From Macrostomum lignano (lineage: Eukaryota), in the NCBI GenBank assembly GCA_002269645.1, contig NIVC01000406.1:30052-94051 (forward strand): DNA of 64,000 bases, written 5' to 3'. Position 1 is the stretch's first letter. Each line of letters starts with the position of its first letter. This document shows positions 14,373 through 64,000 of this stretch, piece by piece. The notes below the pieces were generated by a model that was not told the origin of the DNA, did not search any database, and was given only the letters and a program-made list of their open reading frames with translations. The translations under genes were made by a program, and so were the position numbers.

Positions 14373-14405
<33 letters not shown>

Positions 14406-14489
14406 GTGCTACTACTACCACTACTACTACTACTAGTACTACTACTGCTACTACTACCACCACTACAACTACTAGTACTACTACTACTG

Positions 14490-14535
<46 letters not shown>

Positions 14536-15342
14536 TACTACTACTAGTACTACTACTACTGCTACCACTACTACTACTACTAATGCTACTACTACTACTA
14601 CTAGTACTACTACTACTGCTACCACTACTACTACTACTAATGCTACTACTACTACTACTACTAGTACTACTACTAATGCTACTACTACTACTATTAATGC
14701 TACTCCTACTACTACTAATGCCACTACTACTACTACTAATGCTACTACTACTACTACTAGTACTACTACTACTGCTACTACTACCACCACTACTACTACT
14801 AGTACTACTACTACTGCTACTACTACCACTACTACTACTACTAGTACTACTACTACTGCTACTACTACCACCACTACTACTACTACCACTACGCTCGTAG
14901 TACTACTACTACTACTACCACCACTACTACTACTAGTACTACTACTACTGCTACCACTACTACTACTACTAATGCTACTACTACTACTACTAGTACTACT
15001 ACTACTGCTACCACTACTACTACTACTAATGCTACTACTACTACTACTACTAGTACTACTACTAATGCTACTACTACTACTATTAATGCTACTCCTACTA
15101 CTACTAATGCCACTACTACTACTACTAATGCTACTACTACTACTACTAGTACTACTACTACTGCTACTACTACCACCACTACTACTACTAGTACTACTAC
15201 TACTGCTACTACTACCACTACTACTACTACTAGTACTACTACTACTGCTACTACTACCACCACTACTACTACTACTACTACTACGCTCGTAGTACTACTA
15301 CTACTACTACCACCACTACTACTACTAGTACTACTACTACTG

Positions 15343-15385
<43 letters not shown>

Positions 15386-24300: not shown

Positions 24301-24997
24301 TCCCTGCTCCCTGCATATTACTCTGCTCCCTGCATCTCACCTGCTCCCTGCATCTCCCTGCTCCCTACATCTCACCTGCTCCCTGCATCTCCCTGCTCCC
24401 TGCATCTCTCCTGCTCCCTGCATCTCCCTGCTCCCTACATCTCACCTGCTCCCTGCATCTCCCTGCATCTCCCTGCTCCCTGCATCTCTCCTGCATCTCC
24501 CTGCATCTCCCTGCTCCCTGCATCTCCGCTGCTCGCACACCCCCCCCCACTGACAATGTCCGGCTCTCCCGCAGATGGCCGACTTCGGCTGGTCGGTGCA
24601 CTCGCCGGGCTCAAACAGGACCACCGTGTGCGGCACCCCGGACTACCTGCCGCCAGAGATGATCGCCAACAAGCTCTACGATCACCGGGTGGACATCTGG
24701 GCCACCGGGGTCCTGACCTACGAGTTCCTTCGCGGTGCGCCGCCATTCTACGACAGCAACGACCAGTTGAAAATGTCGAAAATTGTTCGCGGCAAATTTG
24801 ACTGGCCAAAATTCTTTCAACCGTTGGCGAAATCTTTTATCGGCTCCATTCTGCGAGTCAATCCTGACGAACGGGCCAGCGTCCAGCAGCTCATGTCGCA
24901 TGCTTGGATTGAGAACTTCGCCGAGAAGGTGCTGGATCGGGGGCCGAACCTCACTGGCGAGGCTGAGCGACTGGCAGCTGCGGGCTCGGCTAACTGA
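21326..24997 (+). CDS. Aurora-family Ser/Thr kinase, 3 exons, ~576 aa, with a long Ala-rich N-terminus
   Basis: Exons 21326-22141, 22798-23289, 24575-24997 (all phase 0, GT-AG). Motifs WSIQDFDIGQMLGRGKFG, RREIEIQSHLQHPNILRLY, HRDIKPENLLL, DFGWSVH, RTTVCGTPDYLPPEM; KEN box at AKENKRPL. The A vs B subtype is not determinable by eye. Confidence 0.95.
22270..22730. repeat. 21-bp minisatellite, Aurora intron 1
   Basis: Unit GGGAATCCCCATCCAAATCTC. Confidence 0.93.
23297..24525. repeat. 18/36-bp C/T-rich minisatellite, Aurora intron 2
   Basis: Alternating CTCCCTGCATCTCCCCTG / CTCCCTGCATCTCCTCTG; explains the 22888-24801 read-through ORF. Confidence 0.97.
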
Positions 24998-25289
24998 CTG
25001 TGCGACTGCGACTGCGAAGCTTGATTTTTATATTTAATTATACTAATCCTCTTCTTGTCGTGTTTTAATAGCTCCGATAGTATATAAATCTGTTTACCAA
25101 GCTGTCTATTGTAGTACCCTAATTATAGTACACACTGCTCTTTAATATATCAAACCTATGATTTAAGGATAAAAATAAAATATAATAGAAGTACCGAATA
25201 TGCAATCAGTCCCGTGGCTGAGTTCTATTTTTGTGAGCTTGAACCCTTTATTATGCCATTTGCTAAACCACATACCCCAAACTTCACTC

Positions 25290-25880
25290 CCCAATACCTA
25301 CTTCACAAACCATCGACCCCACAACCCCTAACCCCACAAACCCAAACCTCCCAACCCCCAACCCCACAACCCCAAACCCTACAACCTCGCAACCCCTAAC
25401 CCCAGTTACCCCACAAACCCTCCAAACCCACAAACCCAAACCCCCAACCCCCAACCCCACAACCCCAAACCCTACAACCTCGCAACCCCTAACCCCAGTT
25501 ACCCCACAAACCCTCCAAACCCACAAACCCAAACCCCCAACCCTACAACCCCCAACCCCGCAAACCCTCCAAACCCACAACCCCCAACCCCACAAACCCT
25601 CCAAACCCACAACCCCCAACCCCACAAACCCTCCAAACCCACAAACCCTCCAAACCCACAACCCCCAACCCCACAAACCCTCCAAACCCACAACCCCCAA
25701 CCCCACAAACCCTCCAAACCCACAACCCCCAACCCCACAAACCCTCCAAACCCACAACCCCCAACCCCACAAACCCTCCAAACCCACAACCCCCAACCCC
25801 ACAAACCCTCCAAATCCACAACCCCCAACCCCACAAACCCTCCAAACCCACAACCTCCAACCCCACAAACCCAACCCCAC
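25290..25880. repeat. C/A-rich degenerate tandem repeat
   Basis: AACCCCACAAACCCTCCAAACCCACAACCCCC units, downstream of Aurora. Confidence 0.93.
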
Positions 25881-26651
25881 CACGTACCGCCGACCCCAGA
25901 AACCCAGCTGATTTTAGGTTACAATTTCTGAAGTACTTTTGCTGTTTAAACAAAATCCTCTTTCACAAACAAATTATTTTACGTCTCAGCTGATTGCGCA
26001 CCTTATTTATATCGTTGCAACAGGCATTTTAAAATAATTAATGCATTTTGCTAAACCACTGCATTGCAACTGATTTATTGTTTACTTTTATTCCAGTTTT
26101 CAGCTCAAATATTGTTTCATTGTGAAAAATTAAAGTGAAACAAAAATCAGCATTTCGCATGTAACAATGGTGCTTGATTACATTTGCTTTAATTTCTTGC
26201 TTTCTAATTTATACATTCAATACCCCTGAGAGTTCACTAATGTGCTTCTCCTTCTTTACCCTGACAAATATTTTCCCATCAAATGGAAAGTCAAATATCG
26301 TTAATTCAAAGCTATTCGATGGTGTGTTTTTTTAGAAAATAAAAGCTTAAAATAACAAAATAAACGAAATATTATTTTTTAAAGCCGACCGTCTCATTGC
26401 TGTTTGAAACTGGAAAACTCAAATCTTACTCTGGTTGATTATTTACTTCTGTGCCGCTCATTTTATACCGGTTAATTGTAGCACACAACTCTGCACTTCA
26501 CACACCTTAAATCACACGCACGAACTAACGCACCTGGGCTCACACACACACACACACACTCCTCAACTTACACACTCCCGGTCTCGCACCCAACGTACAC
26601 AAACCCCAAATCCCACAAACCCAAATAACACAAACTCAACTCACACAAACC

Positions 26652-26681
26652 CAGGGACTACTCAAGTTTGAGTAGTCCCTG
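26652..26681. mobile_element. 30-bp TIR-only hAT-like insertion
   Basis: CAGGGACTACTCAA-GT-TTGAGTAGTCCCTG (perfect 14-bp arms, CAGGG...CCCTG ends), flanked by CACAAACC on both sides (26644-26651 / 26682-26689). Confidence 0.6.
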
Positions 26682-27645
26682 CACAAACCCAAATCACACG
26701 AACCCAAATCACACAAACCCTAATCACACAAACCCTAATCACACGAACCCAAATCACACAAACCCTAATCACACAAACCCTAATCACACGAACCCAAATC
26801 ACACAAACCCTAATCACACAAACCCTAATCACACGAACCCAAATCACACAAACCCTAATCACACAAACCCTAATCACACGAACCCAAATCACACGAACCC
26901 AAATCACACGAACCCAAATCACACGAACCCAAATCACACAAACCCAAATCACACGAACCCAAATCACACAAACCCAAATCACACGAACCCAAATCACACG
27001 AACCCAAATCACACAAACCCAAATCACACGAACCCAAATCACACAAACCCAAATCACACGAACCCAAATCATACAAACCCAAATCACACAAACCCAAATC
27101 ACACGAACCCAAATCACACGAACCCAAATCACACGAACCCAAATCAAACAAACCCAAATCACACAAACCCAAATCACACAAACCCAAATCAAACAAACCC
27201 TAATCACACAAACCCAAATCACACGAACCCAAATCATACAAACCCAAATCACACGAACCCAAATCAAACAAGCCCCAATCACACGAACCCAAATCAAACA
27301 AACCCAAATCACACAAACCCAAATCACACAAACCCAAATCAAACAAACCCTAATCACACAAACCCAAATCACACGAACCCAAATCATACAAACCCAAATC
27401 ACACGAACCCAAATCAAACAAGCCCCAATCACACGAACCCAAATCAAACAAACCCTAATCACACAAACCCAAATCACACGAACCCAAATCAAACAAGCCC
27501 AAATCACACAAACCCAAATCAAACAAACCCTAATCACACAAACCCAAATCACACGAACCCTAATCAAACAAACCCAAATCACACGAACACATTCACACGA
27601 ACCCAAATCACACGAACACATTCACACAAACCCAAATCACACACC
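26682..27645. repeat. 15-bp minisatellite
   Basis: Unit AACCCAAATCACACA/G; explains the spurious TNPNH ORF. Confidence 0.97.
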
Positions 27646-27662
27646 AACTGACACTCAAACTG

Positions 27663-38590
<10,928 letters not shown>

Positions 38591-40713: not shown

Positions 40714-43700
40714 TCATTCACCGCCTCCGCCAGCTGATGGCGAAGAGGCCCGAACCCATTTTGGGGCGGCGGCAGCAGCGGCAGACGAAGCCGACGCACC
40801 GGCACCGGCTACCCGCTGCTGGCTCCCGCCACCAGAAAACTTTTGCCGATTTCTTTCCATCCATCGAGCGGCTTTCTGCGACTTTTTCGACTCCGGATTC
40901 CTGGCCCGGGGGCCGCCGCCCTCTCCGCCGCCCCTGCCGCCGCCTCTTCGACCACCTCGCCGACCGCCTCGCCCACGATGACTGCCCCTGCCGGCGCCTC
41001 GACCCCGATCTGGGTAACTCCAAGAGAACTCGCTCTGCTGCCGCTGCTGGTCGGGCTTCGAGTCAGACGAGTCCCTGGACCCGAACCGGATGCCCTGTTT
41101 ATCAACCTCATCGACAATTCTGGGATCGAACAGGGCCGGCACTCGCCGGTCGCGCCAGTGCGGATGGCTGAGCAGCACCGTGTCGATGGGTCGCCAATCT
41201 GGCGGCGGCAGGGCCGAAGCCGACGGGGGGTTGGGCGGCATGGACAGCAGGTGCTCGCGGCAGGAGGCCTCGGACAGCATCAGGCGGCAAGCCGGGTCGC
41301 CAGGTGACCGGCGGAGCAGCAGGCGGACGCCGGCGGGGAAGCCGCCGACGGTGACTCGCAGCCGTTCGATGGCGTTGGCCAGCGTGTTGAAGGCCACCAG
41401 CCCGCCGGACAGCAGGCCGGAGCCGGCCGCCTCCTCTGCTAAATCGTCCGGCGATAGAAACTCGTACAGCAGAACTCGACCGTCGAATACGTTGCATCGA
41501 GTCCTTAGCAACGGGGTGTCGCCGCCGGTTGCTAGGCAAGCCAGCCAATCCCGACAGGATTGCAGCGGCGAAGGCGTCTCGCAGCCGAAGTAGGGCTGGC
41601 GCTCCAGCTGGACGCGCAGATGGCATGGGGTTGCTGATTGACAATATTTGGCGTGCCCACTAGCCGCCGATGGACGGGGAGCGAACCCGCGACCTACCGA
41701 ATCGAACAGTCGTTTAGCAGTCTGATGCGGCAGGATAAAGGGTCGGCGAGACCGAACTAGCAGTCGGTGGCGACCGATCTGCAATACGCTGTAGATCAGA
41801 GCTGGGCCGTTTGCTGCTGCTGTTACCGCTGCTGCGGTGGCAGTTGATGAAGTCTCAGCGCCAGCATCTTCGTCATTCGATGAATCAGTGGCGTTGCTGC
41901 ATTTAGAGAAACAGAGGTTTGTTACATATAAAATATATTATAAATGTTTGAAGTGAGGTGTCCTGATAGTGAAATTCTCGAACTTGCGACTGACTGAGAG
42001 TCTGGTTTGTGAATTGTATATGTTTTTTGAATTGTCTATGGTTTGTGAATTGTCTATGGTCTGTGAATTGTCGATGGTCTGTGAATTGTCTATGGTTTGT
42101 GAAGTGTCTATGGTCTGTGAAGTGTCTATGGTCTGTGAAGTGTCTATGGTTTGTGAAGTGTCTATGGTTTGTGAATTGTCTATGGTCTGTGCGAATTGTC
42201 TATGGTCTGTGAAGTGTCTATGGTCTGTGAATTGTCTATGGTCTGTGAATTGTCTATGGTTTGTGAAGTGTCTATGGTCTGTGAATTGTCTATGGTCTGT
42301 GAATTGTCTATGGTTTGTGAAGTGTCTATGGTCTGTGAATTGTCTATGGTCTGTGAAATTTCTATGGTTTGTGAATTGTATATGTTTTTTGAATTGTCTA
42401 TGGTCTGTGAATTGTCTATGGTTTGTAAAGTGTCTATGGTCTGTGAATTGTCTATGGTTTGTGAAGTGTCTATGGTCTGTGAATTGTCTATGGTCTGTGA
42501 ATTGTCCATGGTTTGTGAAGTGTCTATGGTCTGTGAATTGTCTATGGTTTGTGAAGTGTCTATGGTTTGTGAAGTGTCTATGGTCTGTGAATTGTCTATG
42601 GTCTGTGAATTGTCTATGGTTTGTGAAGTGTCTATGGTCTGTGAATTGTCTATGGTCTGTGAAATTTCTATGGTTTGTGAATTGTATATGTTTTTTGAAT
42701 TGTCTATGGTCTGTGAATTGTCTATGGTTTGTGTGAATTGTCTATGGTTTGTGAAGTGTCCAGTTTGTGAAGTGTCCAGATAGTGAAGTGTCCAGTTAGT
42801 GAAGTGTCCAGTTAGTGAAGTGTCCAGTTTGTGAAGTGTCCTGTTTGTGAAGTGTCCAGTATGTGAAGCGCTACCTACCCATCGCAGTCACCCACAGCGG
42901 TGCCAAAAGTTTCCAGCAGAGCCAGATTATCAGTGTCCTCAGCATCCGGACTGATTTTCTGCCTATTCTCCGCAGGCTGCTCCTGTTGCTGCTTCTTAAT
43001 CTGCTTTTGGCTTTTATTAGCTTTAGTAAACTTGAGCCTAGCCCTCATCTGAGCCAGCTTAGCCTGTATGTCAGCTGCAGACACCCCAGCGGCATTAAAG
43101 TGCGGCAGTGTGTTGTCAATGCAGAGCAGCCACTGCCCATTGCCAGCGTCAAATTTGTCATGCGGCTCCTCCATCAGGGCGGGCATCTCCCAGCCAGCCT
43201 CACAGACTCTATCAAGCAGCATGCGCTTCAGAGTGGCGCAGCTCAGCACCAGGTGACAATCATGCCGTCTGGCCAGCTTCTTAGCAAAATCGTCTTCACT
43301 GATAGGACACGGTTTCCAATGCAGCTGGTAGCCAGAGTTGTCAGCTGTCTGATTTGGGAAATTGTCAGCCAAATGTTCGATGCCAATAGTGATGCTGGGA
43401 CAGTTGGACTGGCTGATCTGATGAGGATTCAGCAGCATTCGATGGCCCTGCAAAAATGTAGACTTCGTTAGCTGTATGCGGCATTTTATATGGCTTGGCC
43501 AATGGCCAGAACCAACTGCAGAGGCTTTGCTGCCCATTCCGCCGACTCCCCTGAGCAGGCACACAAGCGCGCGGATATGTACGCAGTCATACGCACAGGC
43601 ACACACTCACACAGGAGTGTACAGCGGTCCTAACTTTATTTATCGTTAGGCATGTACACTTCACTGTGCCTTGGAGGTTGGCCCTCAAGGGCGTTGATTT

Positions 43701-46700
43701 AGAATCGAGTCTGTTTACTAACCGCAGCCGTATCTGCTTAACTTCTTAACAACAATAAAACTTACCCGTCGAGCCACCACTTGCTCAAGTTTAATATTCA
43801 ATTTCACGGCCTCATCGCTGGTGGTGGCCCAGCAGTCGATATCGCCGTTCTGTCTGGGCACCATGGACACACTGTCTAGGGTTCTGTAGTAGTCTGGATA
43901 GCGGCTTCTGCGGTGGCTGAGGGTGCGCTGCAGACACTGAAAGATTGAAGATGAGGTCAAGTTATGAACAACAAAATTAGGTTGGCACCCATCTGCACTC
44001 AGCAACAGCAAAACTACCCTTAACTGATGCTGACAGAATAAAAGCAGGGGCGCCAGCACCAGAGGCTTTAGCACCAGGGGCTTTAGCACCAGGGGCTTTA
44101 GCACCAGGGGCGCCAGCACCAGGGGCTTTAGCACCAGAGGCGCCAGCACCAGGGGCTTTAGCACCAGGGGCTTTAGCACCAGAGGCTTTAGCACCAGAGG
44201 CTTTAGCACCAGAGGCGCCAGCACCAGGGGCTTTAGCACCAGGGGCTTTAGCACCAGAGGCTTTAGCACCAGAGGCTTTAGCACCAGAGGCTTTAGCACC
44301 AGGTTCGCCAGGACCAGGGAAATTTCTTTAAATCTATTTAAGACAGACGACTTACATTAAAATAAGCCTTGTCCTCATCCGGCAGCACGCATGTTGTAAA
44401 ACTTGGAAAGTGCTTGTGAGCCTCTTCTGCGTACTTTTTAAACAGCGCTTGCTCTTTTCGCACTTTGGGCGACAGGAGCTGCAGTGTTTGAATGTGTGGG
44501 AGATTTTAATTATTTTCGGATTTCAAAGAATTGCCTGTTTCAATTATGTTTTGCAGAATCGTTGGTGGGCCTTTAAAGTAGTGGGCTGAATCTAAATGCT
44601 AAAAATACTGTATATAGAAGTAGAAAGGGGAAGCAGCTACAGAGGGGCGCCAGCTACAGAGAGGCGCCAGCTACAGAAGGGGTGCCAGCTACAGAAGGGG
44701 CGCCAGCTACAGAAGGGGCGCCAGCTACAGAAGGGGCGCCAGCTACAGAACGGAGGGGCGCCAGCTACAGAACGGAGGGGTGCCAGCTACAGAAGGGGTG
44801 CCAGCTACAGAAGGGGTGCCAGCTACAGAACGGAGGGGTGCCAGCTACAGAAGGGGTGCCAGCTACAGAAGGGGCGCCAGCTACAGAACGGAGGGGTGCC
44901 AGCTACAGAAGGGGCGCCAGCTACAGACGGGGCGCCAGCTACAGAAGGGGCGCCAGCTACAGAAGGGGTGCCAGCTACAGATGTGGGCGCCAGCTACAGA
45001 AGGGGCGCCAGCTACAGAACGGAGGGGTGCCAGCTACAGAAGGGGCGCCAGCTACAGAACGGAGGGGTGCCAGCTACAGAAGGGGCGCCAGCTACAGAGG
45101 GAGCGCCAGCTACAGAGGCGGCGCCAGCTACAGAGGCGGCGCCAGCTACAGAGGCGGCGCCAGCTACAGAAGGGGCGCCAGCTACAGAAGGGGCGCCAGC
45201 TACAGAACGGAGGGGTGCCAGCTACAGAACGGAGGGGTGCCAGCTACAGAAGGGGTGCCAGCTACAGAAGGGGCGCCAGCTACAGAACGGAGGGGTGCCA
45301 GCTACAGAAGGGGCGCCAGCTACAGACGGGGCGCCAGCTACAGAAGGGGCGCCAGCTACAGAAGGGGTGCCAGCTACAGATGTGGGCGCCAGCTACAGAA
45401 GGGGCGCCAGCTACAGAACGGAGGGGTGCCAGCTACAGAAGGGGCGCCAGCTACAGAACGGAGGGGTGCCAGCTACAGAAGGGGCGCCAGCTACAGAGGG
45501 AGCGCCAGCTACAGAGGCGGCGCCAGCTACAGAGGCGGCGCCAGCTACAGAGGCGGCGCCAGCTACAGAAGGGGCGCCAGCTACAGAAGGGGCGCCAGCT
45601 ACAGAACGGAGGGGTGCCAGCTACAGAAGGGGCGCCAGCTACAGAACGGAGGGGTGCCAGCTACAGAAGGGGCGCCAGCTACAGAGGGAGCGCCAGCTAC
45701 AGAGGCGGCGCCAGCTACAGAGGCGGCGCCAGCTACAGAGGCGGCGCCAGCTACAGAAGGGGCGCCAGCTACAGAAGGGGCGCCAGCTACAGAACGGAGG
45801 GGTGCCAGCTACAGAAGGGGCGCCAGCTACAGAACGGAGGGGTGCCAGCTACAGAAGGGGCGCCAGCTACAGAGGGAGCGCCAGCTACAGAGGCGGCGCC
45901 AGCTACAGAGGCGGTGCCAGCTACAGAAGGGGCGCCAGCTACAGAAGGGGCGCCAGCTACAGAAGGGGCGCCAGCTACAGAACGGAGGGGCGCCAGCTAC
46001 AGAACGGAGGGGCGCCAGCTACAGAAGGGGCGCCAGCTACAGACGGGGCGCCAGCTACAGAAGGGGCGCCAGCTACAGAAGGGGTGCCAGCTACAGATGT
46101 GGGCGCCAGCTACAGAAGGGGCGCCAGCTACAGAACGGAGGGGTGCCAGCTACAGAAGGGGCGCCAGCTACAGAGGGAGCGCCAGCTACAGAGGCGGCGC
46201 CAGCTACAGAGGCGGCGCCAGCTACAGAGGCGGCGCCAGCTACAGAAGGGGCGCCAGCTACAGAAGGGGCGCCAGCTACAGAACGGAGGGGTGCCAGCTA
46301 CAGAAGGGGCGCCAGCTACAGAACGGAGGGGTGCCAGCTACAGAAGGGGCGCCAGCTACAGAGGGAGCGCCAGCTACAGAGGCGGCGCCAGCTACAGAGG
46401 CGGCGCCAGCTACAGAGGCGGCGCCAGCTACAGAAGGGGCGCCAGCTACAGAAGGGGCGCCAGCTACAGAACGGAGGGGTGCCAGCTACAGAAGGGGCGC
46501 CAGCTACAGAACGGAGGGGTGCCAGCTACAGAAGGGGCGCCAGCTACAGAGGGAGCGCCAGCTACAGAGGCGGCGCCAGCTACAGAGGCGGTGCCAGCTA
46601 CAGAAGGGGCGCCAGCTACAGAAGGGGCGCCAGCTACAGAAGGGGCGCCAGCTACAGAACGGAGGGGCGCCAGCTACAGAACGGAGGGGCGCCAGCTACA

Positions 46701-49563
46701 GAACGGAGGGGCGCCAGCTACAGAAGGGGTGCCAGCTACAGACGGGGCGCCAGCTACAGAAGGGGCGCCAGCTACAGAGGGAGCGCCAGCTACAGAGGCG
46801 GCGCCAGCTACAGAGGCGGCGCCAGCTACAGAGGCGGCGCCAGCTACAGAAGGGGCGCCAGCTACAGAAGGGGCGCCAGCTACAGAACGGAGGGGTGCCA
46901 GCTACAGAAGGGGCGCCAGCTACAGAACGGAGGGGTGCCAGCTACAGAAGGGGCGCCAGCTACAGAGGGAGCGCCAGCTACAGAGGCGGCGCCAGCTACA
47001 GAGGCGGCGCCAGCTACAGAGGCGGCGCCAGCTACAGAAGGGGCGCCAGCTACAGAAGGGGCGCCAGCTACAGAACGGAGGGGTGCCAGCTACAGAAGGG
47101 GCGCCAGCTACAGAACGGAGGGGTGCCAGCTACAGAAGGGGCGCCAGCTACAGAGGGAGCGCCAGCTACAGAGGCGGCGCCAGCTACAGAGGCGGTGCCA
47201 GCTACAGAAGGGGCGCCAGCTACAGAAGGGGCGCCAGCTACAGAAGGGGCGCCAGCTACAGAACGGAGGGGCGCCAGCTACAGAACGGAGGGGCGCCAGC
47301 TACAGAACGGAGGGGTGCCAGCTACAGAAGGGGCGCCAGCTACAGACGGGGCGCCAGCTACAGAAGGGGCGCCAGCTACAGAAGGGGTGCCAGCTACAGA
47401 CGGGGCGCCAGCTACAGAAGGGGCGCCAGCTACAGAAGGGGTGCCAGCTACAGATGTGGGCGCCAGCTACAGAAGGGGCGCCAGCTACAGATGTGGGCGC
47501 CAGCTACAGAAGGGGCGCCAGCTACAGAAGGTATAGAGGGGCACTTAGTGAAAGATCGGCCATATCAACTGCTGTATCAATAATACACAATTTAAACTGA
47601 TCGCACACAATAAAAGTGCAAAAGCGCCACACTCACCCGATAAATTTCCAAATCTGCCTCGATAACATTTGGTCCAAGCGTGCGTTTTTCATTTATAGTG
47701 GCACTACTACTGGCCGCACCATCAGTAGCAGTGGTATGCGTAGTTTTGTCAGTCTCAGTTATCTCAGCAATAGCGATGGCATATCGCCAACGCATGGACA
47801 TCAGACGGCTGAATTGCTGACTCTCCGATAAAGTGAGGACAGATTTTTTAGGAAACGGATGCTGAAATTTGATGTTTCGCCGCTGGTACATTGCCTGCCT
47901 CTCGGTTGGAATCTCGGCTGCGGAAGTGGCACCGGAAGTGCCAGATTGAGAGCTAGCAGATGCTGCAGTCTGCGGAGTTCTAGAATTACAAATAATAATA
48001 ATTGATTACACCTGCCTATGTGCAACCGACAGCTCAGCCGCAGCTATTTCTGGACTTGTGAGGGAAGGGGGTCACCACACAGCCTCAATTACCCCAGCTA
48101 ACAGAGTATGATGATTTATGATGATTTATGATGGTTTATGATGGTTTATTATTATTTACGATGGTTTATGATAGTTTATGATGGTTTACGATGGTTTATG
48201 ATGGTTTACGATGGTTTTTGATAGTTTATGATGATTTATGATGGTTTACGATGGTTTATGATGGTTTACGATGGTTTATGATGGTTTACGATGGTTTATA
48301 ATGATGGTTTATGACGGTTTATGATGGTTTATGATGATTTACGATGGTTTACGATGGTTTATGATGGTTTACGATGGTTTATAATGGTTTATGACGGTTT
48401 ATGATGGTTTACGATGGTTTATGATGGTTTATGATGGTTTACGATGGTATGGTTTATGATGGTTCACGATGGTTTACGATGGTTTACGATGGTTTATGAT
48501 GGTTTATGAAGATTTACGATGGTTTATGATGGTTTTTGATAGTTTATGATGATTTCTGATGGTTTACGATGGTTTATGATGATTTATGATGGTTTATGGT
48601 GATTTATGATGGTTTATGATGGTCTATGATAGTTTACGATGGTTCACGATGATTTATGATGATTTATGATGGTTTATAATGGTTTTCGATGGTTTATGAT
48701 GGTTTACAATGGTTTACGATGGTTTACGATGGTTTACGATGGTTTATGATGGTTTATGAAGATTTACGATGGTTTATGATGGTTTTTGATAGTTTATGAT
48801 GATTTATGATTGTTTACGATGGTTTATGATGGTTTACGATGGTTTATGATGATTTATGATGATTTATGGTGATTTATGATGGTTTATGATGGTCTATGAT
48901 AGTTTACGATGGTTCACGATGATTTATGATGATTTATGATGGTTTACGATGGTTTATGATGGTTAATGGTGGTTTATGATGGTTTACGATGGTTTATGAT
49001 GGTTTATGGTGGTTTACGATGGTTTACGATGGTTTACGATGGTTTATGATGGTTTATCAAACTCACCCAGATGACTTTCGCTTTCTCGATTTTGGCAAGC
49101 AAGCACTCTGCTGAGAAGGCTTCGGAGGCGCAGACGACACAGCTGCTGGCAATTTAGAAATATTCGAAGGCTCGTCAGCAAGCAGTACAGTCTTTGTTGG
49201 CTTATTATTAGCCAATGTCTTTGTTATAGTTGTAGTATCATCACGCTTCGTCCTATTAAAAGATTTGCTAGCCTGCAAAGTCGGCCTAGTCTTTGTGCGG
49301 ACAAACTGACTGTCATCATCTGGTGAGCCTGCAGCGGGTTCAACAGGCTCGACTTTCAATTGCGGCTCAGAAGCTTTCGTGGACACCTCTTGCGACTTCT
49401 CAGCCTCTTTAGAGATACCTGCAGCTTCATCTGTGCCAGCCTCTTGCTTTACCTGAGCCGAAGTGCCAAACGTTTCTTCCAGATGTTTCCAATGACTTTC
49501 AAAGTCAAATGTTTGCATAAATCTGTCAAGCTCCTCATCAGCGCCCGTATCTTTGTTGGCCAT
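40714..49563 (-). CDS. ICE2: Little elongation complex subunit 2 (ICE2/NARG2)-like, 6 exons, ~961 aa
   Basis: Exons (minus) 49563-49067, 47979-47637, 44478-44356, 43936-43766, 43447-42879, 41896-40714; GT-AG, phases consistent, 2886 nt. Recalled ICE2-like motifs: PFPKKSVLTLSESQQF, ISEDDFAKKLARRHDCHLVLS...WEMP...LCIDNTLP, and LIYSVLQIGRHRLLVRS...QLERQPYFGCE (NARG2_C). Confidence 0.78.
42010..42860. repeat. 18-bp then 15-bp minisatellites, ICE2 intron 5
   Basis: GTGAATTGTCTATGGTCT units, then GTGAAGTGTCCAGTT units. Confidence 0.95.
44042..44310. repeat. 15-bp minisatellite, ICE2 intron 3; same family as 59660-60835, inverted
   Basis: AGCACCAGGGGCTTT / AGCACCAGGGGCGCC units. Confidence 0.95.
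44630..47530. repeat. 2.9-kb ~18/22-bp minisatellite with higher-order structure, ICE2 intron 2
   Basis: GCCAGCTACAGAAGGGGC plus variants (AACGGAGGGGT, GAGGCGGC); explains the three 900+-aa spurious ORFs. Confidence 0.97.
48018..48101 (-). mobile_element. SINE 3' fragment (copy B)
   Basis: ATGTGCAACCGACAGCTCAGCCGCAGCTA...CACACAGCCTCAATTACCCCAGCTAA matches 61322-61405 and the reverse complement of ~3105-3222. Confidence 0.7.
48105..49056. repeat. 10-bp minisatellite (ATGGTTTATG/ATGGTTTACG), ICE2 intron 1
   Basis: Directly visible. Confidence 0.97.
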
Positions 49564-54736: not shown

Positions 54737-57700
54737 CTAATCGCAGTTGATGTAAGCAGACGTGCTCGACGACCCACGCAGATTCTCATTTGCGCTATTT
54801 GAATTGGAACACTTCAAGAAGCTTGTTAGCGGTGAAATGGACACTTCCTCGTAGCAATTGAGATCGGACTCTTCATAGTAAGTGCCGTCATTGCTGACAG
54901 GACGTATTGGACTGTCTGGGAGCTGTTTCAGCTCCAGAGTTTGCAGTTGACGCTTTTGCTGTTCTAGCAAGCACGCGGTTGCAAGTCGATTTGTTGTTGT
55001 TATCAGAGATTTTGTGTGCCTCTACAAAATTGGGATATGGGAACCTGGCGTGAATCAGAATTGTCATTTTCAGACTGGGTGCACATACCGTATACCCAGA
55101 GGCAGAGGGGGGCAGGGGGCGGCTGACCTCCCCCCCACAAAAAGTGCGCTTCGCTCCTTCGGCCTAAGAGACAGAGCGAGGGGCGTCCATAAAGACAAAG
55201 GGGCGTCCATCTAGAGACAAGGGCAACCATCTAGAGACAGGGGCAACCATTTAGAGACAAGGGGCACGTACCCAAAGACAGGTGCACCCATCTAAAGACA
55301 GGTGCACCCATCTAGAGACAGGGGCACCCATCTACATGTAGAGACTGGGGCACGTACCTAGAGACAGGGGCAACCATCTAGAGACAGAAGGACGTACCTG
55401 AATGTATAGAGACAGGGGCATGCAACCTAGAGACAGGGATACCCACCTAGAAACAAGGGCAACCACTTGGAGACAGGGGCACGCATCTAGAGACATGGGC
55501 ACCCATCTAGGGACAGGAGCAGCCTTTTTGAGACTGGGGCGACCATCTAGAAATAGGGGCACGTACCTAGAGACAGGAATACCCACCTAGAGAACAGGGG
55601 CAACCATTTAGAGACATCTGGGGTCCAAATTCAGGATGCCAAAGTTAAAGTTGATGTGCCAATCACACGCTGGCGCAACAACTCAGAGTCATACATGCAA
55701 CTAACCTTGACGATCAGAGCGGTGACTGCAGCAACAACAATAACGCACAGGACCAGAGCACCAAATAAGATTAACAACTGTAGCAGGGAATTTTTCTCCA
55801 GTCTCCAATCATACTCGAGTTTGCCTCCAGCTGCCGGAGTAGACAGGGCAAAGCTGTTCCTGATGGCTTCAATATCGGAGGCATCCACATTCGGACTCAG
55901 CGGCAGTGTGAAAATCTTCTTAGTTGTTGCAACAAGTAGCTTTTGACTCTTCTGCTCCAGTAGACATTCGAGCAGCACTACGCTTGACTTATCAAATATT
56001 TGAGCCCAGATTTTTAAAGTCCATTTGCTGAGCCTGTCTGATGTTGGAGCGGCTGAGTCCAACAAGCGCTGAGCTGTTTTGTTAGGCAGGGTCTGAAATA
56101 AAGTAAGCCATACGTTTTTTTTCTGGCTACCCGAGCGAGGCCTTTGACAGACTCTCCCGAGGAGTATGCACACGGATGCATGAGCGTAGCATGCACAAGT
56201 TCACTACTCAAGCAATAAGGATTGGCCCAATGGATCAAAGAGGTAATGAATATTCTTCTCTAGTTAAATTGAGTTTATCACTGCGAATCTCAACAAGGTT
56301 AAACACGATCGGGGAATAGACTAATGATAATTGCAGGATGGGGTCCATGAGAATTGCCCGCAGACGAATTAATTGTTCGCCGAGTTTTCCCGCCGAGGTT
56401 TGCCTCAGAATCTAGTTGCCCGTAGCTAAATGCGCTGCAGGAAAAAGGCATTGCGGCAAACCTCGGCGGGCAATTCACTCACGAACAAAATGCACTGCGG
56501 GCAATTCTTGTCTTGCGCCAGGGCGGTGCATGGATACCCTGGCGCAAGCCTTCTGCAACATCGTCCCACGACCGGCTACAATTTTTCATGCCAATTACGC
56601 TGCCTCATGAGCACTTACAAGCGAGCGGATGTACTCGTAATGTACGCAGACACACACACACACTCGCACAGAGTGTACAGGATATATCTTGACACTCTCA
56701 CCTCCTCTAGTTGACCTTTAGTGAAATAAAACAGTTGACAAACTATCGAAGAAATGGGTGGCCAAGCTTCGCTGACAGAGATATTTATCGAGAGCAGCTT
56801 GTTCGTTTCGACATCGGATCCTTCTAAATTGGTCCTTCCACGAACTTTTTTGAAAGAAACAGATGGGAAATATCGATATGTTTTATTCTGCTTTTTGCTG
56901 CATTATAGGTAAGGCTAGAAACTGGAAACCAACTTACAAAAAACTTTAGGTTGATCGCTTTTTCGACTGTAAACATCGGGATATTGATGTTGCATCGACT
57001 GGTTGACCTGACATCTGACTTGCCAATCAGAATTTGTCATCGATTTTGTTAACTTCAATTGGTGAACACTCGAAAATCCGGTTTGCTATGGGAGAAGTGC
57101 GAAAAATAAGGTCAAATTACGTTATGAAGGTTCTAAGAAAACTTTTTCTCAGGACATATATGCTCGTAAAAGGCAACTCAGTGACTTTATTCGAAGCTAA
57201 AATTTGAGAAAGGAATAAAGATCAAAACCATGTATTTCTTCATTACTTACGCTAATCTTTTTCAGCTTTAACTCCGCATCTGAGCCAACAGTTAGCCAGC
57301 ATCTGTGACTCACTGGCCAACCACTGGTTTCGCAACGATGTGAGGTCACTTGGACTTGCTCAATTTGGCCAGCTTCCAAATAATTACTGTTTGCATTGCT
57401 TGAAAACGCTATGCTGTTGATGCAGGGATCTGTAATTTTAATGAGCAATACTGCTAAGCTTAGCATCAAAAATGATCTAGTGAAGACAGTTCAAAAGATG
57501 ACAGATAAAGGAAGGAATTGAAACAAGAGGTTTCTAGTGAAAAAGCGTGATAGCAACAAATCTTTGTCAAAATGATCTCATATACATTGCGTCACCTACC
57601 TGTCACAGTCGGTATTTGAAACAGCCAAGGCTCTTGAAATTTGATTCTTATACCAGTGCTTGGTATGACTTCGCAATGGACCGATGAACCGGTCATCTCT

Positions 57701-60700
57701 TTGACAGGCTGAACTGCGAACACAGATTTGACGTTAAGTAGGGTAGCACCGAGATTGCCTTTCACTGACTCGATCGTCTGTGGGGATGTTGTGCAGTGTT
57801 GTAGAGTTTATGCTCTGGATGTAGGATTAGTGAACTATGAACTAGAGAGAAAGTTGTTTCAAATGTCTCATCCACGCCTGAATATACCAGCAGTGGACGA
57901 AACGCCGAGTCGCAACAGTACGACCCGACGTGGATGATGTAACATGTAACATGCCTTGGTGACTCGATCGTCGCTGATCTTGAAGGCGTAAAATTGCTGC
58001 TAGAGAGAGTCCCATCCTTCAGATTCAGTTTTTGGGTCCTGACCCAAAGACCACTGTCGTATAACAGGACATAAACTCAAAGTAAATTAAAGTAATGGAA
58101 ATATTTTCACTGCCCCAGATCAAATGCAATCATTGATAATGTGATTAAAAATAGGATTTTTACAGGATACTGCCCTCCCAAAAATTACACGATTTTTGAG
58201 TTTACTATAGTGGTCCTTATCCTGACCACCCACTGGACGTCGGCTAGGGCCTAGGACTGCAGAACCGTTCTCAAGGAACAAAACCCGGACAAGATCGACA
58301 AGATCATCGCAGATAATTCAACCGTAGATCTAAATTCATTCATCAACTCATGCACTCTTAGCACAGAATCGTCACTCACCGTGGACAAAAGTGTCATATT
58401 CCACGGAGTTGCCGCGGCGGCTGCAGCACTCGCCTCAATCCGGCACTGATGCCTCGGAGCCGGATAGGAATCGAACGATTCGAACGTCACATTGACCGGA
58501 TATCCGGCTAGCCAAAGAGGTGGAGCATCCAAACGCATGTTGCTGGGATTCACTGGAAATGACAATATTTAGCAATCATTTTTATTATATTTATTTAAAT
58601 GTCAGGATTTAATGTTGTGATATAGGACTAGTGTATAATTATGAAAGATGAAAGATCCTGCAATTTCCACCAATTTAACAAGTGTAACTAACCGTTCATT
58701 TCCAGGACTTGTTCAATCTGCCACCAGCTGTAACCTGAGGCAGTGCCGCCGTGCCTGGAAGCGCAGCGTAGGAAGCCCCCGTGATAGTTCGGGCTGGCCT
58801 CGAATTCGAAAACGCAGCTTTGAGTGCCGCCGGATGTGAGGCCTGGTTGGCAAGTCAGCTACAAAAATGGTGAGAGGTAAAAAAGGAAGTCTTTTGACGT
58901 TAAATCTAGAATGCTTCAAGGATTGCGAATCTAAACGATGCATATGATAGCGCAAGTGTCGGACGCATCGTGCAATCAGGTTATTAGAGAGAAGAGAGCT
59001 GAGAAGAGACCTTGAGCGGGCTGGATTACTATTGTGAAGTTTCAAAGGACCCGGATAGAGAGGCTCTGTGGGCATGTGGCTTGCGGGACGGAGTTTGCCA
59101 CCCCTGTACTATAGCATTTACCAAGCAATTTAAGCCTTAGCAGCAAGCTTTTGAAGACTTGCTATATCGCCCAAACGAGGGCCGATCGATCAAGTTTAGA
59201 ATTTGGCCTTCTTAAATTTGATAAAACAATGTCTGCAAACAGATGCTATACAGATATCACATCGTTTGTGCGTGGTCAGACGTTCCTACGTATCTACTCA
59301 TCTACTGGTCCTTAAAATACGAGTACATCCGGTTTATGATGAAAATCTACGATAACACCTGAGAAAACTCACCTTATTAACTCTCGAAACTTTGCCATCG
59401 AGAGCAGCAATGTCGCAATCAATTTCAGAAGCGGCTCCGTTGTCGCAGCGTTTCTCAGCTACATTGAAACAGATTTTGTCGCCAAGGGTCAAGCTGAGTG
59501 ACTGAGCAAGGCTGCTACAGTATATGTAGGTCTCATTTGACAGTAGTTGCAGCCGCGGCTGGGCACCTTAAATGTTTTTTAGACAATTGGTTGTTATGTG
59601 GAATACTTAAAATCGATTTATTGTACTCAAATATATTTTATAGCGTGTGTTGGCGCCAATGGTGCTGGCGCCCCTGGTGCTAAAGCCCCTGGTGCTGGCG
59701 CCCCTGGTGCTGGCGCCCCTGGTGCTGGCGCCCCTGGTGCTGGCGCCCCTGGTGCTGGCGCCCCTGGTGCTGGCGCCCCTGGTGCTGGCGCCCCTGGTGC
59801 TGGCGCCCCTGGTGCTGGCGCCCCTGGTGCTGGCGCCCCTGGTGCTGGCGCCCCTGGTGCTAAAGCCCCTGGTGCTAAAGCCCCTGGTGCTGGCGCCCCT
59901 GGTGCTAAAGCCCCTGGTGCTGGCGCCCCTGGTGCTGGCGCCCCTGGTGCTGGCGCCCCTGGTGCTGGCGCCCCTGGTGCTGGCGCCCCTGGTGCTGGCG
60001 CCCCTGGTGCTGGCGCCCCTGGTGCTGGCGCCCCTGGTGCTGGCGCCCCTGGTGCTGGCGCCCCTGGTGCTGGCGCCCCTGGTGCTGGCGCCCCTGGTGC
60101 TGGCGCCCCTGGTGCTGGCGCCCCTGGTGCTGGCGCCCCTGGTGCTGGCGCCCCTGGTGCTGGCGCCCCTGGTGCTGGCGCCCCTGGTGCTGGCGCCCCT
60201 GGTGCTGGCGCCCCTGGTGCTGGCGCCCCTGGTGCTGGCGCCCCTGGTGCTGGCGCCCATGCATGGTGCTGGCGCCCCTGGTGCTGGCGCCCCTGGTGCT
60301 GGCGCCCGTGGTGCTGGCGCCCCTGGTGCTGGCGCCCCTGGTGCTAAAGCCCCTGGTGCTGGCGCCCCTGATGCTGGCGCCCCTGATGCTGGCGCCCCTG
60401 GTGCTAAAGCCCCTGGTGCTAAAGCCCCTGGTGCTAAAGCCCCTGGTGCTGGCGCCCCTGGTGCTGGCGCCCCTGGTGCTGGCGCCCCTGGTGCTAAAGC
60501 CCCTGGTGCTGGCGCCCCTGGTGCTGGCGCCCCTGGTGCTGGCGCCCCTGGTGCTGGCGCCCCTGGTGCTAAAGCCCCTGGTGCTGGCGCCCCTGGTGCT
60601 GGCGCCCCTGGTGCTGGCGCCCCTGGTGCTGGCGCCCCTGGTGCTGGCGCCCCTGGTGCTGGTGCCCCTGGTGCTGGCGCCCCTGGTGCTGGCGCCCCTG

Positions 60701-62057
60701 GTGCTGGCGCCCCTGGTGCTGGCGCCCCTGGTGCTGGCGCCCCTGGTGCTGGCGCCCATGCATGGTGCTGGCGCCCCTGGTGCTGGCGCCCCTGGTGCTG
60801 GCGCCCATGGTGCTAAAGCCCCTGATGCCCCTGCTTTAGTGGACAATCAACCCGTCTCGAAAATAGAAAAATGTGATGCACAACTACTTTCTTCGAATTT
60901 ATTGTTTCTTCTGAATAGCTTGGGAGTTTGAGCGTATTGACTCGAGTCTGTTTACCTGTGATATTTATCGCTTGCCACCTCAGTGCATTCGTCGAGCTGT
61001 TCAGCATCATGTAGGCAACGGGCTTCTGTAAATATGTGTGTAAAGTTAAGTCAGTTTTGAAATTGACCAACTAGCTAATAGTCACTTAATGCTTTTCATT
61101 CACACCTGGTTTGCAGAAGCCACGTGACCGATCAGTGGTCGCCAATCTGTGCCGTTATTGATCACGCTCAACCGGGTTCGGCACGGGTCCTCAAACTTTA
61201 TCGCCAGCGGCAGGGACAGTGAGCCAAATGCTTTCACACCTTTGTTGAGTTGGTGGGGATTTCGTGTTTATTGTAATAGTTATATTGCAATAATGGATTA
61301 CATATCTGCCCTAATGACCAGATGTGCAACCGACAGCTCAGCCGAAGCTATTGCTGGGGGGACTGTAGGGGGTCGCCACACACAGCCTCAATTACCCCAG
61401 CTAAATGCTGGCACCCATTTTACAGCTGGGTGGAATTGTAGCAATTCAGAGTTGTGTCAAACCCCCGCCATTCAAGTCGTAAGTCCGACTCTCTAACCAC
61501 TAGGCTACATGTACAACCCCTCTCTAATAACCATATTTTAAGTCTATCATGAAAATTTTGAGTAGCCTTGAGTAGGTTCGATTTCCGTGCGCGGCCGCAT
61601 AATTCATTTGAGCCTTTTGGTGCATGAAATTTGCCTGGTGGGTTGTCTTGCCATGAGGACCAACCCCTAAGGCACAGAGACTGCATGCCTGACGATTAGA
61701 AAGTCATGACCCGCTGTAAATTCTGTGTACCCTGCACAGTACTGGCACTCTGCACTCACCTGTACCTTGGATAATATCAATGCTTGCAATTTTCATCGGC
61801 TGTTTCAATTGCAGAACCAGCCAACTGGGCCCGAATTTGAGCTGGCGACTTGCAGGAAACTCATCGCTAGTGTTGTTGTTGGAGATCAATCCGAGACAGT
61901 CTATCCGGTTGCTGGGTGCCTGCCATATCTGTGCTATTGTTCCGTAGTTTAGATCGACAGTTCGAGTTGACTGGTGGCAGTCGCTGCTCACGGAGCTGCT
62001 CAAGCAGATGAGCACTGCGCAAGTGCAGATGAATGTCACGGTTGTTTGAAGATACAT
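54737..62057 (-). CDS. Unrecognised type-I membrane receptor: signal peptide, discoidin/F5-8C-like region, ~4 divergent Ig-like domains, TM helix, Tyr-motif tail; 12 exons, ~784 aa
   Basis: Exons (minus) 62057-61760, 61239-61106, 61025-60956, 59566-59373, 58858-58693, 58552-58380, 57777-57600, 57429-57251, 57085-56938, 56844-56702, 56092-55706, 55021-54737; all GT-AG with consistent phases and no stops (2355 nt). SP MYLQTTVTFICTCAVLICLSSSVSS; SWLVLQLKQPMKIASIDIIQG; repeated C2-set-like halves (FEFEASPNYHGGFLRC, FAVQPVKEMTGSSVHC, LKLTKSMTNSDWQVRC); TM LLILFGALVLCVIVVAAVTALIV. Confidence 0.75.
55195..55618. repeat. Degenerate ~21-bp tandem repeat, intron 11 of the Ig receptor gene
   Basis: CTAGAGACAGGGGCACCCAT-like units. 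Confidence 0.85.
56340..56540. mobile_element. Small foldback MITE-like element, intron 10 of the Ig receptor gene
   Basis: Inverted repeats AGAATTGCCCGCAG / CTGCGGGCAATTCT (14 bp) and CCCGCCGAGGTTTGCC / GGCAAACCTCGGCGGG (16 bp). No clear TSD identified. Confidence 0.55.
59012..59106 (-). mobile_element. hAT/Charlie-like MITE end fragment
   Basis: The minus strand begins CAGGGGTGGCAAACTCCGTCCCGCAAGCCACATGCCC, a typical hAT-Charlie terminus. A related GCGGG..GGATT.CTATTGTGAAGTTTCAAA segment recurs at ~63175-63210. Confidence 0.5.
59660..60835. repeat. 15-bp minisatellite, intron 3 of the Ig receptor gene
   Basis: GGTGCTGGCGCCCCT / GGTGCTAAAGCCCCT units; explains the spurious GAPGA ORFs. Confidence 0.98.
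61322..61508 (-). mobile_element. tRNA-derived SINE (copy C) with A-box
   Basis: The minus strand starts GTAGCCTAGTGGTTAGAG (Pol III A-box-like), then TCGGACTTAC and CACCCAGCTGTAAAATGGGTGCCAGCATT shared with copy A. Confidence 0.72.
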
Positions 62058-64000
62058 TTTATAAGTCGCTTACGGTATACGGATTGCTGAATCTAAGAAG
62101 ACTACCAAAATATGGAAGAATATATATATATAGAAATCTAGGCCAGTCACATAAATAGGCAGCTATGGCGTGTATGCTGTACATTTCCTCTTTTATAAGG
62201 ATTAGTTATGGTGAAGTTCGTTAACTTATAGTTAAAATACATCGGTTTATTTTGTTTTAATCTATCCGTGCACGTCTTTGCACTGCGCCAGTGCACGCAG
62301 GAGGTTCAGTAATTAGCAAAATCTGCACTATCATATTTTATCATCTCTGACTGGCTATGCTTCAGTTTTTATGTTTACACAAAATTTGTTAAATAACTTT
62401 GGAGAATTTAAATTTCTAGGAAAAAAGCTTTCAACGAGAATAAGAATCGTGTTTTATTTTTGCGGCCATTGGAAGTAGTATCGCATGCAAATTGGAGAAA
62501 ACTGGAACAATTTTTGTTTACATTGTTTTTATAAACTTCTTGAATACTTAAAAAAGTATGTATTGATTCTGCCACAGACTCAATATAGAATATCATATTG
62601 TCTATATATGCTTGACATAATAGAGGTCGATATGAATCTACTCGTAGAAATTGGAATTGATGTGAAAGAAATTACTAGCAACTAAATGTATAAAAAAGAG
62701 TTTTATAAGATCTAGGTATAATAACAGTAATCACTAAAAGTAGATTAATGAGCTGAGTCTATGGTAGCAAGGCTGGTAAACATCTTTTATTTAAATCGAA
62801 CTATTAATTATTGCTAACAAAAAAAGACTTACGCTCACAGACGGTTAGACCATAAACTTGTACAGAAAAAACTTAAAATAAACTAGAAAAAATTAGACTC
62901 AAGAGGTTACAAACAATTTTAAATTACGCCAACGAACACTGACTAAATTAGTTTGTTTTTAGCTAGAGAAGCCAGTGCAGGACTGCGGGCCAGGAGAGGG
63001 GAGAGGGGTAGGAAAGAGAGAAGGGAGACAGTAGACAGGAGAGGCGAGGGAATAAAGGAGAAGAGATGAGACATAACACGAGAGAAGGGATTTAATTGAA
63101 GAGGAGAGAGAAGAGAAGGGAGAGAAGTTAAGGGAGGAGATTAGAGAGAAAACATATGAGAAGATACAAAATTTAAGCGGGTCGGATTGCTATTGTGAAG
63201 TTTCAAAAGCAAAGCATGTGCGCGCGACAAAAAAAAAAATCATGATGCTACGGTAATATTAATAGAAATAATAATGCAATAATATAGTACCAGCTATTGA
63301 TAATATTAATTATCTATAATAACACTATTCTTATAATAAGACTAGCCCATACACTAGCTACTAGTTAATACGTGAGTAATTATTATAAAATTAAATTAAG
63401 GTGAATTGCTTCCATGGCTCAAAAAACTGCACCGATTAGCTACATCATGCGAACAGTAAAAAAGTCTGTCAAAAAATGCTTCGTTATTCCTCGAAAAAAT
63501 TAAAAGCTGGAAAAGTGCAGTGAAACGGATAATATATCCCGTATAAGAGTAAATGCCGGATTGATTGAAGCAATTAGCGCAATAAAAATAACGATATACA
63601 ATAATAATGATATTATTGACTTCACAGCACTGCGACTATCAGTGGAAATGCTGGTCACTGTTGATGTACTGTATTACTTTTATTATCTAATTTCTCGTCG
63701 ATGTTGTCTTCTTTTGGCGGAACTACTGTCGGTGTGTCATGGAACCAGTAGGAACCGACGAATCGGAACTTCACAAAGCAGCGAATCAGCCTTACGAGCA
63801 GTTCGAACAAGGATGAGCACAGATTTGCCGGCTTCGTTTGTGGTCGTTAAACTTAGCTGGCACTTCTGACCTGCAGCCCTGCAGAACCCGTCGGCTGGAG
63901 GCGTCTGCAATGGTAATCATTAGCTGCTCAATCAAGCTATTCTCGGCACTAAAGTACTTTTAGCTACCAACTACTCTTAGCTACTCAAACTACTCTTAGC

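Follow-up and report, generated by a model that had tools for sequence, protein, structure and literature searches.

Which protein is encoded between positions 62057 and 54737 on the minus strand of a 64,000-nucleotide stretch of the genome of the flatworm Macrostomum lignano (GenBank assembly GCA_002269645.1, contig NIVC01000406.1, positions 30,052 to 94,051; hereafter the window, with positions counted from its first letter)? A preliminary description of this locus had proposed a 12-exon gene for a 784-residue type-I membrane protein, in which a discoidin-like module is fused to about four immunoglobulin (Ig)-like units with systematic disulfides between strands C and F, and had recognised no named gene with this architecture. 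Our analysis indicates that the locus is a genuine protein-coding gene of M. lignano, which is annotated in public protein sets as a fragment only. Its product, of about 773 residues (816 residues with the doubtful exon 7), is probably a type-I glycoprotein that spans the membrane once and is composed of a discoidin-like head and four Ig-like units.

Gene model and protein topology

The gene model was assembled by linking co-linear open segments of the three-frame translation via GT-AG splice sites. It runs on the minus strand from an ATG at 62057 to a TAG at 54739-54737, which makes the previously given end points exact to the base (start codon at one end, last base of the TAG at the other), and comprises 13 exons joined by GT-AG introns throughout, with a total of 2451 nucleotides and 816 residues; leaving out exon 7 yields 12 exons and 773 residues. 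A stop-free multi-exon frame thus exists as proposed, with other totals than the 12 exons and 784 residues originally counted. The nearest form is a 785-residue splice variant (V3) that keeps exon 7 and skips exon 10 via a weak donor (CATG/GTTTTG), and the earlier model probably corresponds to this variant without exon 10. All peptides quoted at that time (GAASEIDCDI, SYPAPRHQCRI, GWPVSHRCWL, AWPPISSIVCQL, NVTFES and INISVS) are contained in our translation.

Coding potential was assessed by a codon-usage log-odds score, for which other genes in the window served as the training set. The coding frame ranks first among the six possible frames in 10 of the 13 exons (binomial p ~3e-6 by our own calculation), and a negative score was obtained in each of the three frames for all introns apart from intron 3, with its minisatellite. 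The reading frame has its first ATG at 62057, which is preceded by an in-frame stop four codons upstream.

An exhaustive phmmer search with exon 1 as the query returned one true match, UniRef100_A0A1I8I804, an M. lignano entry named 'ASH domain-containing protein'; two plant tandem-repeat proteins that were also matched were judged to be chance hits. Residues 121-335 of A0A1I8I804 are identical to exons 1-4 joined as modelled, ending one residue short of the end of exon 4, which identifies both as products of the same gene. Since exons 1-4 are spliced identically in this entry, three junctions of our model are independently confirmed. When compared to the model, A0A1I8I804 is a 335-residue fragment with neither start nor stop and with a different 5′ end, and it contains none of the four Ig-like units in full and neither the membrane anchor nor the tail. 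An ASH domain was sought in A0A1I8I804 and none was found. An exact look-up in the protein collection revealed no copy of any of the four splice variants, nor of the 180-residue open reading frame (ORF) of exon 12.

Two of the exons deserve separate consideration. Exon 7 possesses the weakest splice sites of the gene (a purine-rich acceptor, ctgaag, and the donor CTG/gtatat) and its coding frame is not the top-scoring one. Its inclusion raises the number of ectodomain cysteines to an odd 21, compared to 18 without it, and in unit 2 it widens the Cys-Cys spacing from 56 to 99. Because of the weak splice sites, the phase 0-0 boundaries, the non-best frame, the odd cysteine count and the oversized unit 2, we regard this exon as doubtful, and it is probably absent from the main product. 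An origin of exon 7 as a duplicate of exon 8 was considered and rejected, the two sharing merely a 13-nucleotide identity within the range of shuffled sequences. Exon 10 has a perfect GTAAGT donor (T/gtaagt), shows the phase pattern of the second exons of the other units and gives unit 3 an even cysteine count; its weak points are the acceptor (ttgaag) and a codon score that lies 0.01 under that of the best frame. The splice sites of exon 5 are tttttgtag (acceptor) and G/gttagt (donor).

The encoded protein begins with a signal-peptide-like N-terminus and contains a single strong hydrophobic helix at residues 695-720 (Kyte-Doolittle maximum of 3.08 at residue 699), which is followed by KRHTK. 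The N-x-S/T motif occurs 12 times at 11 distinct sites, all of them located in the ectodomain and none in the tail. These features bear out the type-I membrane topology that had been assigned to this flatworm protein. The tail of 94 residues harbors a short heptad-like stretch and the acidic tyrosine motifs YYEE and YEEV. The predicted order is a cleavable signal peptide, a discoidin (F5/8 type C)-like jelly-roll (C27-C184), four Ig-like units, a short stalk, one helix and the tail. Judged by this architecture, the most likely role of the product would be that of a cell-surface adhesion or recognition receptor, whose head would bind a glycan, lipid or matrix ligand and whose Ig-like units would space this head away from the membrane. 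Through the tyrosine motifs of its tail, the protein could engage SH2-type adaptors or the endocytic machinery and in this way serve signalling or internalisation.

Profile evidence for the extracellular modules

The sole Pfam family found on the N-terminal module is F5_F8_type_C (PF00754; 13.0-13.1 bits, E 0.11-0.12), a match below the curated cut-off of 28.2 that relates residues 45-97 to profile positions 12-54 of 127. With this single hypothesis fixed in advance, we compared the module also to a reference set of five discoidin domains verified in the PDB, namely factor VIII (FVIII) C1, FVIII C2, NRP1 b1, NRP1 b2 and lactadherin C2. Alignment to this set by hhalign gave a P-value of 0.003 over 51 columns, but a probability of 10% only, and paired WLVLQL...IIQG...INNGTDW with the core WLQVDL...TQG...S-DG--W, the stretch encoded by exon 2 being placed on the 'S-x-DG-x-x-W' region of discoidin domains. 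A hidden Markov model (HMM) built from the five domains scored 6.4 bits, a value that was matched by 5 of 5000 shuffled sequences (p 0.001) and exceeded those of the remaining 4995. BLASTP against the FVIII C2 domain found the hallmark WL..QG motif as the best local match (E 0.21). Finally, C27 and C184, which are predicted to form a disulfide bond, bracket 157 residues, in agreement with the ~150-160 residues between the terminal cysteines of discoidin domains. These comparisons favor the discoidin-like module that had been proposed, and the label appears reasonably, not firmly, justified for the N-terminal part of the predicted protein.

For the Ig-like units, the best Pfam profile is the CD80-like C2-set (C2-set_2, PF08205), which matches unit 2 in the E-F strand region with an E-value of around 0.005 (0.0044-0.0055; 17.2-17.5 bits versus a cut-off of 21). 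The alignment, at 17.4 bits, covers the second half of the domain only, where TIESVKG...SSVHCEV is placed on profile positions 43-80 with no net gaps. When the poly-Ala loop of unit 2 was trimmed, the match was still confined to the second half. As a control, we examined the canonical Ig domain encoded by a neighbouring leucine-rich repeat (LRR) gene, and this domain also remained sub-threshold (E 0.0065; V-set 17.1 versus 26, Ig_3 17.4 versus 30) and scored no better than unit 2. In this flatworm, Pfam simply lacks sensitivity for Ig domains. Matches to the two kinds of domain named in the preliminary description, discoidin and C2-set_2, were obtained below their curated cut-offs.

The exon structure provides a second line of evidence. 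All four units, which measure 98-117 residues, are encoded by two exons each, preceded by a phase-1 intron and split by a phase-0 intron (phases 1,0,1,0,1,0,1,0 with the exon-7 introns left out). In NCAM-type genes of the immunoglobulin superfamily (IgSF), Ig units are likewise split over two exons with phase-1 outer boundaries. Together with the C2-set_2 match, this two-exon phase 1-0/0-1 structure supports the assignment of the units as Ig-like.

Cysteine register and competing readings

With a chance that we put at a little better than even, the cysteines of the four units form ordinary strand B-strand F pairs, the predicted bonds being C208-C264, C324-C423, C480-C521 and C581-C636. Leaving exon 7 out, the Cys-Cys spacings in units 1-4 are 56, 56, 41 and 55. 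Unit 3 (C480/W492/C521, spacings 12, 29 and 41) has in addition G484 and P486 and therewith the full C-x-a-x-G-x-P...W signature. In unit 2, the putative strand assignment C324/W338/C423 gives spacings of 14, 42 and 56, and the neighbouring canonical Ig domain (C11/W23/C65) shows 12, 42 and 54. If the ungapped PF08205 alignment is extended backwards, C324 and W338 come to lie ~56 and ~42 profile positions before the F-strand Cys, where the strand-B Cys and the Trp of this profile would be expected. Extra cysteines are present in units 1 and 3, and units 2 and 4 hold exactly two each. It had been stated that every unit carries a Cys where the strand-C Trp is expected. This does not hold for unit 3, in which W492 stands directly after the quoted Cys, and for the other units it depends on the register. 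As the same cysteines fit the canonical register, systematic C-F disulfides are unproven and less likely: the spacings agree with B-F pairs at least as well, with W338 at +14 and W492 at +12 from the respective first cysteine.

A possible though doubtful alternative is that units 2 and 4, and perhaps unit 1, have lost the strand-B Cys (now F311 and V569, with VNVTFES and INISVSE as strand B), carry a Cys at the position of the strand-C Trp and form a same-sheet C-F disulfide, with unit 3 being canonical. The textbook case of an Ig domain with such a bond between strands C and F is domain 2 of CD4. Alternating hydrophobic residues (I199/F201/V203, V307/V309/F311 and I565/I567/V569) would put V203, F311 and V569 at the canonical Cys position, and a Gly precedes V203, F311 and V475 by exactly seven residues, as it does in CD4 domain 2 (G111-L118) and in the neighbouring Ig domain (G4-C11). 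The motif [IH]-x-C-x-[IL] is common to all four units and would make C218, C324, C491 and C581 strand-C residues. The x-P-x-P-x-h-x-C of unit 2 resembles the I-set motif G-x-P-x-P-x-i-x-W, and TLES-x8-QCR in CD4 domain 2 has a local counterpart in TFES-x9-QCR of unit 2. That units 2 and 4 hold two cysteines each also speaks for this reading. The likeness to CD4 domain 2 accordingly consists of a hydrophobic residue at the strand-B Cys position, seven after a Gly, and a Cys 12-13 residues later in a Q-C-R context. However, the prior is against this arrangement, as two cysteines 55-56 residues apart are a normal B-F pair. In CD4 domain 2 (PDB 1cdy_A residues 98-178), the sole C-F example that we verified, the spacing is 29, unlike the 56 and 55 of units 2 and 4; only C491-C521 in unit 3, at 30, would be similar, in a register that is itself putative. 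Furthermore, W338 falls at the canonical Trp place if C324 is the strand-B Cys, the 'glycine + 7' rule does not hold within this family, as seen from the C/G/P/W signature of unit 3, and sequence similarity to CD4 domain 2 is not significant. Pairwise comparisons with CD4 domain 2 and with the neighbouring Ig domain do not separate the two registers.

A second alternative concerns the 5′ end. In A0A1I8I804, the exon at 63894-63796 is joined via proper GT-AG sites to the 62016/62015 acceptor within exon 1, skipping the modelled ATG and signal peptide, and 85 additional residues stem from outside the window. The gene might thus be longer and start upstream of the window, in which case the ATG at 62057 would be unused and the hydrophobic stretch internal. 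We consider this unlikely. A0A1I8I804 is a start-less fragment whose upstream part matches no Pfam family, and an internal hydrophobic segment of 20 residues would bring the glycosylated, Cys-rich ectodomain to the wrong side of the membrane, whereas the modelled ATG comes first in its frame, shortly after a stop, and opens a textbook signal peptide. Moreover, multi-gene precursors make up ~7% of the assembled M. lignano transcripts (PMC5730564), which renders a chimeric model plausible. Owing to the missing start codon, the family-less upstream part, the inverted topology and the occurrence of such precursor transcripts, we consider the 5′ arrangement of A0A1I8I804 to be a chimeric or minor form, and the 63796-63894 exon represents an alternative 5′ exon or else belongs to a chimeric model. 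The 3′ end of this exon (GTGCTCATCC...GCTC/gtaagg) resembles the stretch of exon 1 that codes for the signal peptide (GTGCTCATCTGC...GCTCC/gtgagc), which hints at a partial duplication.

Besides the divergent 5′ splicing of A0A1I8I804, several observations weigh against a discoidin-like receptor with four ordinary Ig-like units that starts at 62057. No family attains its Pfam gathering score anywhere in the protein, Pfam yields zero Ig matches in units 1, 3 and 4, and a phmmer search of the whole model against the PDB gave no match at E<=10. Similarity is not significant either among the units (z<1.4) or between them and CD4 domain 2 or the Ig domain of the neighbouring gene, and MAFFT alignments of the units were unstable. 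A single-sequence AlphaFold2 model of A0A1I8I804 was uninformative, with a mean predicted local distance difference test (pLDDT) score of 30.6. Within the canonical register, the Cys pairs of units 1 and 4 (56 and 55 apart) come without a Trp, positions Cys-2 and Cys-4 of units 1-3 are occupied by K/A, H/P and H/T and not by hydrophobic residues, and two prolines lie ahead of C324. The way in which exons 5-13 are joined, and whether exon 7 belongs to them, was deduced by sequence logic alone, and the proposed function is one that we infer purely from the architecture. The protein has probably diverged so far that weak profile matches alone remain. It is quite improbable that the modules have some other Cys-containing beta-rich or mixed fold and that the Ig-like motifs reflect pattern-matching on a fast-evolving orphan: the null results for Pfam in three of the units, for internal repeats and for the PDB would suit such a fold, as would a weak match of the second half of unit 4 to the helical family TPR_ANAPC2 (E 0.075), but unit 2 matches C2-set_2 as strongly as a genuine Ig domain of this genome matches its own profiles, unit 3 bears the C-x-a-x-G-x-P...W...C signature, the modules measure 98-117 residues, and two-exon units with phase-1 boundaries are characteristic of IgSF genes.

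Genomic surroundings and relation to known receptors

The exons of the model and the features associated with them are listed in Table 1. 

Table 1. Exons of the discoidin-like/Ig-like gene model and associated features in the window (residue numbers refer to the predicted protein)
Feature	Position	Strand	Content
upstream 99-nt exon	63796..63894	-	only in A0A1I8I804; located by tblastn; splice sites ctccag/CC ... GCTC/gtaagg
exon 1	61760..62057	-	ATG, signal-peptide-like segment (residues 1-25), start of the discoidin-like module including WLVLQLKQPMKIASIDIIQG
exon 1 cryptic acceptor	AG at 62016-62015	-	used by the A0A1I8I804 model
exon 2	61106..61239	-	discoidin-like module, INNGTDW motif; junction IIQGTG/VKAF same in A0A1I8I804
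exon 3	60956..61025	-	discoidin-like module, ALRWQAINIT; junctions SANQ/KPVAY and INIT/GAQP same in A0A1I8I804
15-bp minisatellite GTGCTGGCGCCCCTG, 77 copies	59647..60814	.	fills most of intron 3
exon 4	59373..59566	-	end of the discoidin-like module (to C184) and first half of unit 1 (C200, C208, C218)
exon 5	58693..58858	-	second half of unit 1: C235, C247, F-strand-like FLRC264AS; best-of-six codon score
exon 6	58380..58552	-	first half of unit 2: PLWLAG, VNVTFES, SYPAPRHQC324, poly-Ala, W338
exon 7	57888..58016	-	doubtful phase 0-0 cassette, 43 residues, three Cys
exon 8	57600..57777	-	second half of unit 2, EMTGSSVHC423EV; strong splice sites; Pfam C2-set_2 profile positions 43-80
exon 9	57251..57429	-	first half of unit 3: C450, C480-ETSG-W-P, C491, W492; donor AGC/gtaagt
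exon 10	56938..57052	-	second half of unit 3, F-strand-like SDWQVRC521QVNQ; 115 nt, phase 0 to 1
exon 11	56702..56844	-	first half of unit 4, LLSINISVSEAWPPISSIVC581QL
exon 12	55706..56092	-	second half of unit 4 (VVLLEC636LLE), stalk, transmembrane helix, residues 695-720 (55789-55712); best codon frame
exon 13	54737..55021	-	cytoplasmic tail (KRHTK..., LLEQQKRQLQTLELKQL, YYEESDLNCYEEV), TAG stop

Several introns contain repeats. The GTGCTGGCGCCCCTG unit of the minisatellite in intron 3 has 70 matches in the window versus 0.16 expected, and it recurs in the opposite orientation ~16 kb away at about 43718-44299. The last intron holds a degenerate 20/40-bp tandem array of ~20 copies with 67% matches (55199-55616). 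Intron 11 harbors a palindromic element of 159 bp that resembles a miniature inverted-repeat transposable element (56350-56508), with perfect 14-nucleotide terminal inverted repeats (AGAATTGCCCGCAG / CTGCGGGCAATTCT) and an inner inverted repeat of 22 nucleotides. Elsewhere, kilobase-scale tandem arrays that mimic very long multi-frame ORFs (44596-47600, 14263-16306, 25284-27651 and 41969-42783) occupy a large share of the window. This abundance is consistent with the published M. lignano genome, in which simple and tandem repeats account for 15% of the sequence (PMC5730564).

Among the neighbouring genes, the LRR gene that supplied our control lies on the minus strand at 27663-29988, its canonical Ig domain being encoded by the ORF at 28732-29115. 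An Aurora-type kinase gene is located on the plus strand at 22888-24997, and its catalytic domain is split by an intron with a GC-rich minisatellite of ~1.2 kb; the best Aurora kinases in the database share 55-58% identity with it, and its own M. lignano protein was not among the matches. A largely intact retrotransposon of the type without long terminal repeats, with long open frames, resides on the minus strand at 32639-37572; read from their translations, one of these frames would encode a reverse transcriptase and another one a protein with an RNase H-type motif.

The exhaustive search with exon 1 detected no homologue outside M. lignano, in line with the earlier impression of an unrecognised architecture. 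A word-indexed protein search with the whole model and with the ectodomain freed of low-complexity sequence likewise gave no match, a result that is unreliable in that the search also missed A0A1I8I804 with its 215 identical residues. No paralogues were found by tblastn within the window, and literature searches yielded nothing relevant on the accession or on a discoidin-Ig combination in M. lignano. A named family in which a discoidin head, Ig-like units and a short tail occur together is not known to us. The protein assembles familiar parts in a new way, within a genome that evolves fast. The bolder proposal, a lineage-restricted Macrostomum receptor family undescribed in any named gene, in which a discoidin-type lectin head is joined to Ig-like domains, some of them with a same-sheet C-F disulfide of the CD4-domain-2 type replacing the cross-sheet B-F bond and the core Trp, strikes us as rather unlikely.

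If the model is true, the M. lignano catalogue would gain the full-length gene of a surface receptor, which is now represented in a public protein collection by a mis-started fragment of 335 residues under a misleading name, and its discoidin-plus-Ig-like combination would match no named family that we know. As the locus illustrates, even canonical Ig domains of this flatworm are hardly detected by standard profile libraries, so that its IgSF repertoire is probably undercounted. The cysteine question is of modest weight, given that the ordinary reading is at least as good and that disulfides are known to be missing or relocated in some Ig domains.

Orthology to nephrin, Kirrel or discoidin domain receptors (DDR), which had been named as an outcome that would speak against a novel gene, was not found: Pfam revealed no I-set or fibronectin type III (fn3) match, exhaustive phmmer with exon 1 nothing related apart from the A0A1I8I804 fragment, and the 94-residue tail has no Pfam tyrosine kinase match. 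With NCAM-type IgSF adhesion molecules, the predicted protein shares tandem, two-exon, phase-1-bounded Ig-like units, a type-I topology and a short cytoplasmic tail. It differs from them in having a discoidin-like head, no fn3 repeats, no significant I-set/Ig match and no detectable orthologue.

DDR1/2, neuropilins, DCBLD2/ESDN and CASPR are membrane proteins with discoidin (F5/8 type C) domains, and neuropilin and CASPR2 were among the PDB matches when discoidin domains were looked up. Like these proteins, the model combines an N-terminal extracellular discoidin-type module with a single-pass type-I topology, and it shares with them W-L-x-h-x-L...Q-G and N-G-x-x-W in the right order as well as terminal cysteines ~157 residues apart. 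Unlike in these proteins, the hallmark Asp is replaced by Gln, the hallmark motif contains a one-residue insertion and the two conserved Trp are separated by a gap of 33 residues. According to Pfam, kinase, CUB, MAM, LCCL and laminin-G domains are absent; instead, the discoidin-like head is followed by four Ig-like units and a tail of 94 residues.

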